A DNA stretch of 63,413 bases, filler included, from Octopus bimaculoides (lineage: Eukaryota), in the NCBI RefSeq assembly GCF_001194135.2. It is 4 parts of 4 records of this genome, joined end to end, with 100 filler letters (N's around TTAATTAATTAA, not from the genome) between each part and the next. Parts side by side here need not be neighbours in the genome. Positions count along the whole stretch, not along the records: positions 60,152 to 63,413 come from NW_026425862.1; 3 more parts are not named here. One strand, given 5' to 3'. A program made the translations under genes and the position numbers. Within the stretch, counting starts at the first letter, position 1. Every line of letters begins with the position of its first letter. Below the pieces are notes generated by a model that searched no databases, was not told the DNA's origin, and was given only the letters and a program-made list of their open reading frames with translations. Below, one piece after another: positions 15,361 to 63,413 of the stretch.

Positions 15361-16966
15361 ATTTTAGTTATCTTTTCTCTCTTTCTCTTGCATGGATTTA
15401 TTTGCAAAAAAGTTCTAAAGTCTCCTGCAATCTTTTAGAAGTGTTGATATGTATTCAGTTAATGTCACAATTATTTTGTTAAATAATTTTAGTCTGTGTG
15501 TATTATATACACACACACACACATATACACGCATACTACAGAAGTTGTCTGTTGTCTGTGATAAAAAAAAACAACAAAAACCCCTTCAAATTCGCTCACT
15601 TAAGCTATCATATATCTTCCATAATAACAGTAACTCTTGCTAATGACTTTCCCCTCTCAACTTTGTGCTTCTCGTCCTTGTGACTTTCTTCTCTGCCTGA
15701 TAATCTGATGCCATCCAATCTCTTCAGGAAATTTCATAGCCCAGCGCCATTGGAATTCCACTGTGATGTACGTGACAGCACCACCCACCCACCTCCAATC
15801 ACCACCATCGTCACCACCACCCTTCTCTACTGTTGCCCACCCAACCACCCACTGACCTCCACCCATCAGCGTCTCCCCCATCCCCCGCCTCGCCCTGCCC
15901 CCACCCGTCCAAACTGGGTCGGTTGGGTTGTAAGNNNNNNNNNNNNNNNNNNNNNNNNNNNNNNNNNNNNNNNNNNNNNNNNNNNNNNNNNNNNNNNNNN
16001 NNNNNNNNNNNNNNNNNNNNNNNNNNNNNNNNNNNNNNNNNNNNNNNNNNNNNNNNNNNNNNNNNNNNNNNNNNNNNNNNNNNNNNNNNNNNNNNNNNNN
16101 NNNNNNNNNNNNNNNNNNNNNNNNNNNNNNNNNNNNNNNNNNNNNNNNNNNNNNNNNNNNNNNNNNNNNNNNNNNNNNNNNNNNNNNNNNNNNNNNNNNN
16201 NNNNNNNNNNNNNNNNNNNNNNNNNNNNNNNNNNNNNNNNNNNNNNNNNNNNNNNNNNNNNNNNNNNNNNNNNNNNNNNNNNNNNNNNNNNNNNNNNNNN
16301 NNNNNNNNNNNNNNNNNNNNNNNNNNNNNNNNNNNNNNNNNNNNNNNNNNNNNNNNNNNNNNNNNNNNNNNNNNNNNNNNNNNNNNNNNNNNNNNNNNNN
16401 NNNNNNNNNNNNNNNNNNNNNNNNNNNNNNNNNNNNNNNNNNNNNNNNNNNNNNNNNNNNNNNNNNNNNNNNNNNNNNNNNNNNNNNNNNNNNNNNNNNN
16501 NNNNNNNNNNNNNNNNNNNNNNNNNNNNNNNNNNNNNNNNNNNNNNNNNNNNNNNNNNNNNNNNNNNNNNNNNNNNNNNNNNNNNNNNNNNNNNNNNNNN
16601 NNNNNNNNNNNNNNNNNNNNNNNNNNNNNNNNNNNNNTTTTTTTTTTCTCAAAATTCAGTTTTAGGTTTTACTGGGGAATTAAAACATGAAATCTACTTT
16701 TAGTAAATTGTAACAATTTTTTTATTCTCTATTTTGCTATGTTTTAGTTGGTGTCTCCAGCTTAAAAACTGTTTTCTTCATTACTTCCTCCAATAGACTC
16801 ATTTATGAAGAAGGCCCAATGGTGAGGGAGATTGGCAGTCATTGTTGTTGAGAACATGGAGAGGCAAAGTGGCTGAGTGGATAACAACTAAGATGAGATG
16901 TAATTCAGGAGTCAGAAAACAATATTTTATTCTAAGTTGCCACAGTTCACCTTAGTTGTCAGTAAT

Positions 16967-52210: not shown

Positions 52211-53771
52211 TACATGTACACACACATACACACACATATACATACTACATATACATAGAGGTAGAGCGAGAGGGTCATATATACATAGATATACATATAT
52301 ATTTATTTATCTATCTATTTATTTATTTATTAATACAAGAATATAAGGATAAACTCACGTTAATGATTTTTATCAGGTTGTCAGGTGTATATATCACTTG
52401 TTTATTCGTATACTTCGGACTTCAAAATTTTTACTACTAATGCAAGAATATGGAATATCGTTATGATTTACGAACACGTACAAGTATGGGTGAGCTTATA
52501 TTGCCACAAACACAGATTTATAGTATCGTATTAAGCAATTAGCGCCGTGTCGTTTTTTGCCTGCGTTTCAAGGATGGTTTTTAACCGTTTAATGAGAATG
52601 GCTTCTTTGAAAACTATGATTGCCGATATTTCGCTACATGGCTTTGATAGTGACCGGAATGTTATTGATACGACGATTTTTCAGATGTGTTTTTAACTCA
52701 CGAGATGTTAGCTTGATTAATTTATTTTACGCTGATAATTAGATGGCAGACAGTACTTCCGCATGTATGGCACTGTCTGGTAAGAGACCATGTTTTTCCT
52801 TTAAGTTACACATAAGAAATGCTTGCTAATTGCTGTTACTGCCATTGATACTCTTGTTGTTGTCGCCGACGTCGAAGTCATTGTAGTTGTTGTTGTTGTT
52901 GTTGTCTGGTCTGGTATTAATACTTGTTTTCTATTTAGGATTGTNNNNNNNNNNNNNNNNNNNNNNNNNNNNNNNNNNNNNNNNNNNNNNNNNNNNNNNN
53001 NNNNNNNNNNNNNNNNNNNNNNNNNNNNNNNNNNNNNNNNNNNNNNNNNNNNNNNNNNNNNNNNNNNNNNNNNNNNNNNNNNNNNNNNNNNNNNNNNNNN
53101 NNNNNNNNNNNNNNNNNNNNNNNNNNNNNNNNNNNNNNNNNNNNNNNNNNNNNNNNNNNNNNNNNNNNNNNNNNNGGTGGTGGTGGTGGTGGTGGTGGAG
53201 TGGTCCTTTTGCTACTACCACTTCTATTTCTGTTGCTGTTGTTGGTATTCAGCTCGAAATCATCCCTACCAAGTAGAATGAATAGTGAAGTCGTTAGAGG
53301 GTCGAACAGAATGCATTGCGGTTCAGGTAATCAGCACTCCGAATTCAGACTCTACGATGGTCAAATCTGCAGTTCTATAAATAAAATAACAAGCAAAGAT
53401 TGGGGTTGATACTTGTCTAACTTTCCTTGGTTGTCTCAGTGCCTGTTTCTCTCTCCCTCTCTATCTGTCTTTCTCTCTCTCTCTCTGGTTGTCTGTCCGT
53501 CTCTCTCGCTCCTTCTATCTATCTATTTGTTTTCTATCTTTCTACCTATTTCTCTATCTGTCTACTTATTTATTTATATATCATTCAATCTATCTATGTG
53601 TGTGTGTATGATTCACCCACTTTGCACTGTTGTAGAGGTCGTGGAAGAGCACTCGCAACGTCCCTTTATAGAAATGGTGAAGGCTTCAGCGAAGAGTTAA
53701 TAACTTGCTTAAGTAATGATGATGATGATGATGATGATGACGATGATGATGATGATGATGATAACAATAAC

Positions 53772-60151: not shown

Positions 60152-60199
<48 letters not shown>

Positions 60200-60596
60200 G
60201 ATAGTAATAATAACAATAATCCTTTCTACAATAGGCACAAGGCCTGCAATTGAAGTTAGGGATTGAGATGGACTCAGTGAATTTGGGTTCAGGGGAGGGG
60301 AAATGAAGGAAGAGAAACAGGAGTGGGTCAGGGAGCAGGAAGCGGTGATAAAGGACAGTAAAGTTTAGGAGGATAAGGGGTATCATCTACAGTCCCTGAA
60401 TGTGTTTATCTCAGAAGCTTGATGGGATGCATGTTAAAAGATGAGTTATGAGGAAAAGTTTTGACAATTTTGTCAAAATGAGGTTTTCTCAAGCACAGCA
60501 TATTGCCATTCATGTTGGCCCCTTGTTATCCCCTCCAAGAAGCTTGGCGTATTCATATACTTATATGTCTGTGTTTGTGTTTTTTTTTTATTACAG

Positions 60597-60722
60597 CTTG
60601 CTTGTATAATGGTAAATATTATCCCCCTGGTATAATCAAGGCTGGAGAGTGTGTGTGCACAGACGAGGGCATAGTGGCCTGTAAAAAGCCTAAACTACCC
60701 ATGGAACCAAAAGTAAGAACAA
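60597..60722 (+). CDS. Internal coding exon, 4-Cys FnI/VWC-like extracellular module 1 (ACLYNGKYYPPGIIKAGECVCTDEGIVACKKPKLPMEPKVRT)
   Basis: Acceptor tttttttattacag|, donor ACAA|gtaagt, 126 nt, phase 1-1, open frame; paralogous to 62401-62529. An alternative donor after 60712 (phase 0) is possible. Confidence 0.8.
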
Positions 60723-60767
60723 GTAAGTAAAATTTTCCAATGAGATTTCTTTCCCCGCAGAATATTC

Positions 60768-60950
60768 TTCTTTTCTACTCTAGGCACAAGCCCCAAAATT
60801 TGATGGGAGCAGCCGATTAGATCAACCCCCAATACACAACTGGTACTTAATTTATCGACCCTGAAAGGAGAAAGGCAAAGTCGACCTCAGCGGAATTTGA
60901 ACTCAGAACACAGCAGCAGACAAACTACCACTAAGTATTTTGCCTAGCAT
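60768..60950 (-). mobile_element. SINE family A, tail type 2, intronic
   Basis: ttctactctaggcacaag..aaaggcaaagtcgacctcagcggaatttgaactcag. Confidence 0.8.
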
Positions 60951-61319
60951 GCTTTACACCCACAGAATACTAAAGCAGAAACTTGTTGAGTTTATTCTGT
61001 TGTGTCTGGGGAGAGTCAATTTCTTATTGTGCCTTGAAATTTAACACACTCACCGTTAAAATTTCCACTTATTTCTTATTTTTATTTTCCTAAAATTTTG
61101 AGTTTATTTCTACAGATTTTCTATAGAATACAGTGTTGACTTAAGCATTGATGTAGTATATTAAAGTTGTATATTAAAGATGATGTAGTATATTAAAGTT
61201 GCATAACGAAATACAGTGTCCCTACATGTCATTAAAGAGTAAATCGTGCATAATTTTAGCTGGTTCTTGCTTACAAAACATTGTAGAATATCTTTATTAC
61301 ACACATGTACATTTGAAAG

Positions 61320-61719
61320 AGTGGAGGCGCAATGGCCCAGTGGTTAGGGCAGCAGACTCGCGGTCATAGGATCGCGGTCATAGGATCGCGGTTTCGATTC
61401 CCAGACCAGGCATTGTGAGTGTTTATTGAGCGAAAAACACCTAAGTCCCACGCGGCTCCGGCAGGGGATGGTGGCGAACCCTGCTGTACTCTTTCACTGC
61501 AACTTTCTCTCACTCTTACTTCCTGTTTCTGTTGTGCCTGTAATTCAAAGGGTCAGCCTTGTCACACTCTGTGTCACGCTGAATATGCCCAAGACCTACG
61601 TTAAGGGTACACATGTCTGTGGAATGCTCAGCCACTTGCACGTTAATTTCACGAGCAGGCTGTTCCATTGATCAGATCAACTGGAACCCTCGACTTTGTA
61701 AGTGACGCAGTGCCAACAC
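61320..61719 (+). mobile_element. SINE family C, full length, intronic
   Basis: 11-bp TSD acatttgaaag at 61309-61319 and 61720-61730; 14-bp slippage duplication tcgcggtcatagga in the head (61358-61385). Confidence 0.9.
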
Positions 61720-62029
61720 ACATTTGAAAGTATGTTGGTGTATCTCAGACAACATGGTTGGAGTATAGTAAGATAACAGGGTATTGCAGTAGGAGAGGTT
61801 ACAAAGGTAAAGGAGGGTGGTGAAATAAAATAGAATAAAATTAAATTAAATAAAATAGCATAAAAAGTAGTTGAGCACAAGCGGGTATCACCATCGTTAT
61901 TATTTAACATCTGTTCTCCATGCTGGCATAGGCTGGAGAGTTAGACAGGAGCTGAGTTTTCCAAAAACATCTTTGTGTATGAGTCAACCTACCTCTTTTA
62001 GCAGTAAATTTTCTGAATAATCTGACTTG

Positions 62030-62329
62030 TATCATTGCCAGTGCGTCTGAACTGGCTCTTGTGCGGGTGGCACATAAAATACACCATTTTGAGTGTGGCT
62101 GTTGCCAGTACCGCCTGACTGGCCTTCGTGCAGGTGACACATAAAAGCACCCACTACACTCTCTGAGTGGTTGGCGTTAGGAAGGGCATCCAGCTGTAGA
62201 AACTCTGCCAAATCAGATTGGAGCCTGGTGTAGCCATCTGGTTTCACCAGTCTTCAGTCAAACCGTCCAACCCATGCTAGCATGGAAAGCGGACGTTAAA
62301 CGACGATGATGATGATGATGATGATGATG
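62030..62329 (+). mobile_element. Retroposon family D with (GAT)n tail
   Basis: Reverse complement of 5406-5699. Confidence 0.85.
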
Positions 62330-62400
62330 TATGCCAGAGAATACAGTATGTCTGTTTACAAGTGCTTGCTTATTTATATGTTTGTATATCTTTATTATAG

Positions 62401-62529
62401 TGTGCGATTTCAATAGGCAAAAAGTGCCAGTTGGACAAATTGAAGGTACTAGCTGTACATGTTATAAAAATAGTTCAGTGATGTGTTGGGGTCCAGCAGA
62501 TTCAACAAAAAGACCATGCTCTCCGACAA
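62401..62529 (+). CDS. Internal coding exon, 4-Cys module 2 plus one extra Cys (VCDFNRQKVPVGQIEGTSCTCYKNSSVMCWGPADSTKRPCSPT)
   Basis: Acceptor tctttattatag|, donor ACAA|gtaagt, 129 nt, phase 1-1; same C-x16-C-x-C-x7-C spacing as module 1. Confidence 0.8.
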
Positions 62530-62639
62530 GTAAGTATCTAATGTATATTTCTCCTTGAAATGACAAAAAGCATTTCTATTCTAGTTGAAGCTGTTCTAAC
62601 CCCTCGCCACCATTCTTTTTTGCTTGCTTCATGCTCTTG

Positions 62640-62860
62640 ATCAATAGGGTTCTGGGTCATCCCAGGTTAGTGGTTCCAGAGATGTCATCATATGTAGAGC
62701 CAACCAGGCTCGCCAGTGCCTTCCACCACTGGCAGTCCCATACCAACCCCTCTACATACTGCAAGGGGATGTCATGCGTCTGGAGATCTTTCCCAATCAT
62801 GTCCGGCCATCCAGTGCCTGAGGTCTTTTCCAGTATACAGCTACCGTCTCAAATGAGAAT
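62640..62860 (-). pseudogene. Possible RTE-like LINE 3' relic
   Basis: RPQALD/WPDMIGKDLQTHDIPLQYVEGLVWDCQWWKALAS resembles GRP..W.D.I..DL...AE..A.DR..WR and the 5263-5400 fragment. Confidence 0.3.
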
Positions 62861-62885
62861 AAAGCCCAAGTAAGATAATCTAGAG

Positions 62886-63140
62886 CAGGGGTTTTCAAAC
62901 TTTTTGTTTTGCGGACCCCTTTATATTTCAGGCTTTACCTTATGAAATTTACACATAAATATTTGCTTAAAATAACATATATTTTTAAATTTATTTATTT
63001 AACAGTATTTAACAAAATAGGTTTATTGTCAATTAAAAGATTTTGATTTAAAAAACATATATAAAATCAAATTGCCCATAAAAAGTATTTGCTGTCCAAG
63101 GACCCCCTGTGGTCCGTGGACCACAGTTTGAAAACCCCTG
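62886..63140. mobile_element. hAT (Charlie-like) MITE, intact
   Basis: Perfect 16-bp TIRs caggggttttcaaact / agtttgaaaacccctg; perfect 8-bp TSD atctagag matching the NTCTAGAN target. Confidence 0.95.
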
Positions 63141-63413
63141 ATCTAGAGGGAGACAGAGGACATGTCCATACCAGTGGGGTGGGGCTGTGGGTTGCTATGT
63201 GCATGCATTTATTTTGTTTTCTTTTGTCAAACCACTTAGTTACAGGAACATACATAAACAAACACTAGTTGTCAAGCAGTGGGGTGAGGTCGGAGACAGA
63301 CACAAACACCACACACACACACAACACACACACAATGATTCCTTCATCTTCACAGATGATTACCATGGTTCCGAGTTCAGTCCCACTGCATGGCACCTTG
63401 GGCAAGTGTCTTC

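Follow-up and report, generated by a model that had tools for sequence, protein, structure and literature searches.

Several kinds of secreted protein combine a fixed scaffold with driven change elsewhere in the sequence, including conotoxins, snake venom toxins, gamete-recognition proteins and immune effectors. A two-strand sheet and a three-strand sheet with 1-3 and 2-4 disulfides form a layout common to fibronectin type I (fn1, FN1) and the first VWC subdomain. Here we describe two exons of Octopus bimaculoides in a window of 63,413 nucleotides (filler included; four parts of RefSeq assembly GCF_001194135.2), where they lie in the last part (positions 60152-63413, from NW_026425862.1, hereafter "the piece"). 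The two are adjacent module exons of a secreted, cysteine-rich octopod protein that is uncharacterised, and its coding modules have changed far faster than the surrounding introns. As a whole, the evidence is best explained by an octopod secreted array of mini-domains whose disulfide scaffold is fixed while their surfaces undergo diversifying selection, an account which we consider probable.

The exons encode the peptides (x)CLYNGKYYPPGIIKAGECVCTDEGIVACKKPKLPMEPKVRT (exon 1) and (M)CDFNRQKVPVGQIEGTSCTCYKNSSVMCWGPADSTKRPCSPT (exon 2). A preliminary description of this DNA had reported two phase 1-1 exons with identical C-x16-C-x-C-x7-C spacing and ACAA/gtaagt donors, all of which the sequence confirms, and the two 28-residue cores have 9/28 residues in common. 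In a six-frame scan of the piece, the exact pattern occurs in two places only, both on the + strand, while 3000 first-order Markov simulations of the piece produced it 0.0027 times per simulated piece and never twice on one strand. Interspersed repeats fill much of the piece, none of them overlapping exon 1 or exon 2. A word-indexed protein search with the joined 85-aa peptide gave no candidate, and no annotated protein in a 5.8-billion-protein collection has exactly these exon sequences, so the gene is apparently unannotated in O. bimaculoides.

An exhaustive phmmer search of 1.84 billion representative proteins found only two genuine relatives: O. vulgaris CAI9741643.1 (P0002, E 2e-9) and Argonauta hians GAB1608938.1 (P0003, E 2.5e-7). 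The same list held 15 bacterial RCC1-like matches (P0001, P0004-P0017), which we rejected as spurious; they matched on ...VxCWG.../...VMCWG.... CAI9741643.1 is labelled 'hypothetical predicted protein' and, as UniRef A0AA36BWR9, 'kielin/chordin-like protein'. Searching from P0002 led to O. sinensis LOC115225789, an 'uncharacterized protein' with six RefSeq isoforms (XP_029652607.2; X2-X6). These protein searches turned up relatives in Octopus and Argonauta only, and a literature search found the accessions LOC115225789, A0AA36BWR9 and CAI9741643 mentioned in no paper. The protein had been described as unrecognised, which holds insofar as the module is without a Pfam or PDB counterpart, but the gene is already in the databases, annotated as uncharacterised in O. 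sinensis, O. vulgaris and A. hians.

For comparison we used a 92-kb O. vulgaris locus (L001), in which the gene spans 72 kb, and the A. hians locus (L002). Collinear blocks found by blastn (Table 1) place the window exons at the positions of two O. vulgaris exons, and the splice sites of both align base for base with those of the exons for the first two four-cysteine modules of P0002. The window exons thus correspond by position to modules 1 and 2 in O. vulgaris CAI9741643.1 and O. sinensis LOC115225789. The piece itself comes from another octopod, or is an old paralogue, approximately 9-10% diverged from O. vulgaris in neutral sequence.

The introns of the window and O. vulgaris are identical at 732/804 positions (91%), with 90-96% identity in alignable blocks and a Jukes-Cantor distance of about 0.04-0.10. 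The exons, however, are identical at only 151/246 positions (61%; exon 1 57-60%, exon 2 66%), a difference with a Fisher p of 5e-25. Across the ungapped 28-codon cores, amino-acid identity to the positional counterpart is 10/28 for module 1 and 13/28 for module 2, and the overall non-synonymous and synonymous distances (dN and dS) are 0.55 and 0.34. Core 1 is saturated in this comparison. Core 2 alone gives dN 0.43 and dS 0.20 (omega, i.e., dN/dS, about 2.2), with one synonymous difference among its 13 identical-residue codons; its closest modules, Argonauta a2 and a3, match it at 14/28 residues.

A second contrast between exon and intron, independent of the first and cleaner, comes from within O. 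vulgaris, where a 2.6-kb unit at L001 70818-73390 is copied at 81913-84500. Outside the exons, 33/2324 positions differ (98.6% identity), whereas the module exon, m3 versus m4, differs at 20/123 positions (83.7% identity), and about 19 of these 20 changes are non-synonymous. This gives dN 0.24 and dS 0.026 (dN/dS about 9), the dS matching the intron distance of 0.014, and non-synonymous divergence exceeds intron divergence with p = 6e-15. The m3 and m4 types both occur in O. sinensis with the same distinguishing residues, so the difference between them has been maintained and is not an assembly artefact.

What has been kept can be seen in an alignment of 20 modules. C2, G12, C19 and C29 are invariant, I14 and C21 are nearly so, and most other positions are highly variable. 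The x16 spacing is present in 19/20 modules and C-x-C in 18/20, the exceptions to the latter being module 1 of O. vulgaris and of O. sinensis, which have C-x-Y. Among the positions that had been named as shared by the two window exons, the G of P-x-G is invariant in all 20 modules and V/I-x-C is general, but [YF]-N is not. N-x-S/T sequons recur among the modules (e.g., NSS in window module 2). The fifth cysteine that had been noticed in module 2 is conserved in both O. vulgaris and O. sinensis (Table 1).

Relatives of the window exons hold 6-7 or more modules. The N-terminus of P0002 and P0018 is the signal-peptide-like MNFVFILSTLLVICGLRYAGG, followed by a Cys-rich region that includes CIYKNKDYVEGDTFIDGCKVCYCNGHKTMRCVKIC (a CxxCxC stretch) and then the module array. 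In O. vulgaris, the exon with most of the signal peptide (from residue 12) is ~32 kb upstream of module 1, the CxxCxC exon is ~25 kb upstream, and the next module is ~3.2 kb downstream of module 2; the earlier expectation that a signal peptide and further modules would lie outside the piece is thus borne out in this counterpart. Linkers range from 5 to 25 residues. Across three genomes we examined 16 module exons; in each, an AG acceptor precedes the Cys1 codon by 2 nt (or 8 nt) and the short linker is followed by a phase-1 donor. Apart from the two window exons, 14 module exons were read at the O. vulgaris and A. hians loci, and 14/14 follow the layout of one module per phase 1-1 exon. This supports the proposal that the modules arose by old exon duplication under structural constraint, on a conserved Cys/Gly scaffold. 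Each mini-domain with its linker is one phase 1-1 exon, and therefore module duplication, loss or splice-skipping keeps the reading frame. The O. sinensis RefSeq isoforms, which are annotation models, show the cassette behaviour that symmetric exons permit: X4 to X6 each leave out a single module, either 3 or 4, and others use alternative donors within linkers.

The preliminary description had likened the module to VWC and mucin E modules and to fibronectin type I. In Pfam, window module 1 matched VWC2L_1st (E 0.0028, 18 bits against a cut-off of 27) and one other module matched VWC2L_2nd (E 0.0035), both below threshold; the other 18/20 modules had no VWC2L match, none of the 20 matched fn1 (at E up to 10), VWC or TILa, and the full-length relatives matched nothing at all. 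The 85-aa peptide and the full-length O. sinensis protein had no phmmer match in the PDB, where a module profile gave only glucokinase noise (E above 3) and no FN1 chain. A word-indexed search with the 20-module alignment returned nothing at E up to 1, even though P0002 and P0018 modules were part of that alignment, so this search appears unsuited to very short profiles. When compared by hhalign, the module profile showed no relation to the protein's own CxxCxC region, so descent of the four-cysteine module from that region is not supported. The likeness to VWC thus extends to two faint VWC2L matches, and that to fibronectin type I comes down to the cysteine pattern and a predicted strand order.

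That strand order comes from AlphaFold2 models of one and two modules, made with shallow module alignments. Both window modules are predicted to have the same five-strand topology, with a predicted local distance difference test (pLDDT) score of about 73-84 in the cores and below 50 in the linkers. In the model of module 1, strands occupy residues 2-4, 7-9, 12-14, 19-21 and 27-29 (pLDDT about 80-84 over residues 1-30), and in that of module 2 they occupy 43-46, 49-52, 61-63 and 69-71 (pLDDT 77-82). Cys1 is placed on strand 1, C-x-C on strand 4 and Cys4 on strand 5, a predicted order that fits the layout of FN1 and the first VWC subdomain. We infer from these models a mini-domain in which a two-strand hairpin packs against a three-strand sheet, with disulfides that would join C1 to C3 and C2 to C4. 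We would best describe the module as a previously undescribed two-disulfide mini-domain of VWC-like or FN1-like character.

Taken together, the product would be a beads-on-a-string protein that is secreted and probably N-glycosylated. After the signal peptide and a Cys-rich N-terminal region containing CxxCxC would come an array of mini-domains of about 28 residues on short, flexible P/K/T/E-rich linkers. Only the scaffold (four Cys, one Gly and Ile/Pro positions) would be conserved, with exposed positions under strong diversifying selection, and symmetric exons would let the array grow, shrink or be alternatively spliced. Given a conserved scaffold with diversifying exposed positions, the protein would most likely act as an extracellular binding array whose rigid scaffold presents fast-changing surfaces to a co-evolving partner (e.g., prey, a pathogen or a gamete); we infer this binding role, and secretion in O. 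bimaculoides, from the features above. A more specific version is possible, and we hold it only tentatively: an octopod lineage-restricted hypervariable display protein, an array whose two-disulfide mini-domains would derive from VWC and may be an FN1-like fold that arose independently outside chordates. It would be diversified by positive selection on exons, exon duplication/loss and cassette splicing, and would take part in venom, immunity or gamete interaction as a recognition or effector molecule that co-evolves.

Several results weigh against the account of a selected, secreted array. First, the intron distance between the window and O. vulgaris is 0.10 but dS is much higher, at 0.34-0.49, so part of the exon excess may stem from saturation, linker misalignment or module replacement, and not from selection alone. 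Second, window module 1 shares more core residues with O. vulgaris module 5 (14/28) than with the module at its own position (10/28). Third, the Fisher test of non-synonymous versus synonymous change between m3 and m4 reaches just p = 0.04, and the dN/dS of about 9 depends on a single 40-codon pair. Fourth, Foldseek found no PDB match at E 0.001 or below for either the one-module or the two-module models. Finally, the O. sinensis RefSeq isoform models are the only hint of transcription.

Table 1. Module exons, splice signals, conserved elements and collinear blocks in the window, with positions in the O. vulgaris (L001) and A. hians (L002) loci. A slash marks the exon-intron boundary.
Feature	Window position	Strand	Position in L001 or L002	Details
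Module exon 1	60597-60722	+	L001 64523-64666	126 nt, phase 1-1; four-Cys core and P/K-rich linker; collinear with the O. vulgaris exon
Module exon 2	62401-62529	+	L001 67477-67626	129 nt, phase 1-1; four-Cys core and linker with fifth Cys; collinear with the O. vulgaris exon
Polypyrimidine tract and AG acceptor, exon 1	60576-60596	+		gtgttttttttttattacag; acceptor ttattacag/CT; position conserved in O. vulgaris
Donor gtaagt, exon 1	60723-60728	+		ACAA/gtaagt; aligned to ATAA/gtaagt in O. vulgaris
Intron between exons 1 and 2	60723-62400	+		1678 nt, mostly interspersed repeats; unique parts collinear with the O. vulgaris intron
Acceptor, exon 2	directly 5' of 62401	+		ttattatag/TG
Donor gtaagt, exon 2	62530-62535	+		ACAA/gtaagt
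Core, module 1	60599-60682	+		CLYNGKYYPPGIIKAGECVCTDEGIVAC; C-x16-C-x-C-x7-C; predicted five-strand beta mini-domain
Core, module 2	62403-62486	+		CDFNRQKVPVGQIEGTSCTCYKNSSVMC; C-x16-C-x-C-x7-C; holds N-S-S glycosylation sequon
Codon of fifth (linker) Cys, module 2	62517-62519	+		Conserved as ETPCTARN in O. vulgaris and O. sinensis
Upstream intron stretch, neutral yardstick (blastn collinear block)	60159-60545	+	L001 63462-63869	Single-copy within L001; 350 matches, 37 mismatches, 90.4% identity
Blastn collinear block, contains exon 1	60553-60953		L001 64482-64894	
Blastn collinear block, intron	61956-62032		L001 67330-67406	
Blastn collinear block, contains start of exon 2	62328-62477		L001 67402-67553	
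O. vulgaris modules		all on one strand	L001 64525, 67479, 70878, 80436, 81973, 83116, 89889	Locus scan
A. hians modules		all on one strand	L002 14090, 15029, 16917, 18310, 19388, 22089, 23333	Locus scan

In existing annotation, the gene is apparently missing from the gene set of O. bimaculoides; the O. vulgaris model is truncated and the A. hians gene is probably split. The CAI9741643.1 model ends by reading through a donor into the intron (...EGWPMHGILVFIILCFDTSSSPSSSFVAE and a stop; L001 80427-80618 and 81964-82155), omits the modules at L001 83116 and 89889, and includes an exon at 53144-53230 (RKFDFIIHRLYNFGHLNALRT) that is in none of the O. sinensis isoforms. The two adjoining A. hians models (204 aa and 428 aa, L002 10001-25172) are probably a single gene; module exons are regularly spaced across both, with one at 16917 between the models. 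Within the O. vulgaris array, the module 4 copies at L001 80436 and 81973 are 100% identical and ~1.5 kb apart, and both are surrounded by a long array of ~68-nt tandem repeats across ~78.5-81.7 kb. The copy of the duplicated unit at 70818-73390 has a module-5 exon that lacks its 5' 36 nt, including the acceptor, and is therefore a pseudo-exon. Loose Cys-pattern scans give false positives elsewhere in this locus, at L001 24700-25330, where a long run of (TG/TA)-rich low-complexity sequence is translated into C/Y/V/M repeats.

The rest of the piece is rich in repeats, and Rfam and tRNA scans of it gave no match. Window 61300-61716 is a repeat with a tRNA-like head, possibly a tRNA-derived short interspersed nuclear element (SINE), with four copies in L001 at 74-83% identity and an internal 14-nt tandem duplication (TCGCGGTCATAGGA x2, 61358-61385); ARAGORN and Rfam call nothing in it. 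A very abundant interspersed repeat at 62031-62328 (more than 20 copies in L001) contains a direct repeat spaced 67 nt (62035-62079, 62102-62146) and ends in a (GAT)n run (~62305-62328). Other high-copy repeats lie at 60811-60953 and 63364-63413 (12 or more and 20 or more L001 copies, respectively, up to 98% identity), and a (TA)n run at 60152-60194. In the intron 3' of exon 2, window 62530-63217 is without counterpart in the O. vulgaris locus and may be a lineage-specific insertion. It holds an 80-aa open reading frame (ORF) at 62631-62873, where no ORF has a Pfam match, and an element at 62879-63147 resembling a miniature inverted-repeat transposable element, whose AT-rich interior is flanked by 23-nt terminal inverted repeats that are 96% complementary (TCTAGAGCAGGGGTTTTCAAACT and AGTTTGAAAACCCCTGATCTAGA); this element has no copy in the 92-kb O. 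vulgaris locus.

One alternative is that the protein is structural, i.e., part of mucus, an adhesive, an egg case or another matrix, with the modules as cross-linkable beads and the fifth cysteine forming intermolecular disulfides. A mucin, adhesive or matrix protein had been suggested in the preliminary description. The secreted, modular, Cys-rich make-up, the P/T/K-rich linkers and the conserved linker cysteine all suit such a role. Furthermore, kielin/chordin-like proteins, which contain VWC domains only, are reported to be the most abundant of the Argonauta eggcase matrix (bioRxiv 10.1101/2021.07.10.451900), and this is also the UniRef label of the O. vulgaris protein. The eggcase proteins, however, have recognisable VWC domains, whereas the octopod family has no Pfam match over its full length, so the two need not be the same proteins. 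The linkers are unlike the proline/threonine/serine-rich (PTS) domains of mucins, and a dN/dS well above 1, with exons changing faster than introns, is unusual for purely structural proteins. We therefore regard a structural role as conceivable, if rather doubtful.

Selection would not be needed if unequal crossing-over or gene conversion among paralogous exons had exchanged or replaced modules and the introns had meanwhile been homogenised, leaving non-orthologous exons in orthologous introns. This could account for a dS that is 3-5 times the intron distance and for the affinity of window module 1 to O. vulgaris module 5, and the array has been recently rearranged (the identical module 4 duplicate, the truncated module-5 copy and the near-identical flanking introns). 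Swapping is nevertheless unlikely. For both exons, the boundary of divergence falls on the splice sites at either end, and the exon 1 linker can still be aligned base by base. No donor above 50% identity was found for module 1. Module 2 is nearly as close to its counterpart as to the Argonauta modules, so it has no clearly better donor. In the m3/m4 pair, dS is close to the intron distance while dN is far higher, a pattern beyond conversion.

An extracellular regulator of bone morphogenetic protein (BMP) signalling, of the chordin/kielin/crossveinless-2 type, is very unlikely. In crossveinless-2, the BMP-2 contact is carried by VWC subdomain 1, and the mini-module could be akin to that N-terminal, BMP-binding subdomain; the UniRef name and the weak VWC2L matches in 2/20 modules point the same way. 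Against this, neither the modules nor the full-length proteins match a VWC hidden Markov model (HMM), the modules are without CxxCxC or CCxxC, and their profile is unrelated to the one CxxCxC region that the protein does have. Relatives confined to Octopus and Argonauta, diversifying selection and a changing module number are also ill-suited to a conserved developmental regulator.

The modules might instead be small disulfide-rich domains of the pacifastin protease-inhibitor type, whose variable loops would track target proteases. Tandem multi-domain precursors and hypervariable loops would fit this idea, and the best small-domain Foldseek match was indeed the pacifastin-family inhibitor SGPI-1 (2xtt_A; template modelling score 0.41 on target, 35% identity over 23 columns). 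With E 5 and probability 0.10, however, this match is at noise level, and no module has a Pfam match to the family. The last two cysteines of pacifastin are absent from the octopod modules, and with them the reactive-site loop, making this highly improbable. Lastly, although their exact sequences match no annotated protein, it is scarcely credible that the exons are chance ORFs or decaying pseudo-exons, given a pattern probability of about 0.003 per piece for even a single occurrence, intact frames, conserved splice-site positions, scaffold residues retained despite about 40% nucleotide divergence, and a rate of change 4-5 times that of the introns where a pseudogene would be expected to match them.

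If the account of a secreted mini-domain array under diversifying selection is true, the gene represents an undescribed family of small extracellular modules that has no equivalent in Pfam or the PDB and that we found in Octopus and Argonauta alone. The gene would also be a clear cephalopod case, not annotated as venom, of exons outpacing their own introns several-fold. A pattern of exons evolving faster than introns marks arms-race or mate-recognition proteins, making this gene a candidate for studies of octopus venom, immunity and fertilisation. It also illustrates how symmetric phase 1-1 exons permit array expansion, contraction and alternative splicing.

The closest known genes, LOC115225789 and CAI9741643.1, share with the window exons their gene position, collinear introns at 90-96% identity, exon boundaries and phases, the module pattern and the fifth cysteine of module 2, but the cores are just 36-46% identical in amino acids. 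Module 1 of O. vulgaris and O. sinensis has CEY (Cys3 lost) and has lost aromatic residues, whereas window module 1 has CVC, all four cysteines and the Y-x-G-x-x-Y-P consensus. A. hians GAB1608938.1 and its adjoining model have the same module, one per phase 1-1 exon, and a CxxCxC region upstream of the array; they differ in core identity (25-50%, i.e., 7-14 of 28 residues), in module number (7 or more) and in one module with x17 instead of x16.

Judged by sequence, the module is not a member of the VWC, fn1, TILa or pacifastin families. With fn1 it shares four cysteines in the order C...C-x-C...C, a module of ~30-45 residues and a predicted two-strand hairpin followed by a three-strand sheet. 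Modules of fn1 are about 40-45 residues, however, and the octopod core is shorter (28 residues, with loops of x16 and x7). The likeness would be at most convergence, or shared descent through VWC. With VWC it shares the start C-x-[YF]-x-G-x-x-[YF]-P-x-G, the C-x-C...G...C centre, faint VWC2L matches and a small, beta-rich, disulfide-bonded, extracellular character. A VWC domain has ten cysteines, including C2-x-x-C3-x-C4 and C8-C9-x-x-C10, but the octopod module has four and is without CxxCxC, CCxxC or a second subdomain. TILa and mucin E modules differ from it in their C-x-x-C-x-C, which the octopod modules are without, as they are without a TILa match. Pacifastin domains have six cysteines (C-x9-12-C-N-x-C-x-C-x2-3-G-x3-6-C-T-x3-C) with the reactive site between Cys5 and Cys6, in contrast to four cysteines and no C5-C6 loop here.

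In mode of evolution, the nearest parallels are conotoxins, snake venom phospholipase A2 (PLA2) and three-finger toxins. There is no sequence relation to any of them, and the octopod protein is a multi-module array, not a single mature peptide. What they have in common is hypervariable sequence set within a fixed Cys framework, a greater divergence of exons than of the flanking introns, and dN/dS above 1.

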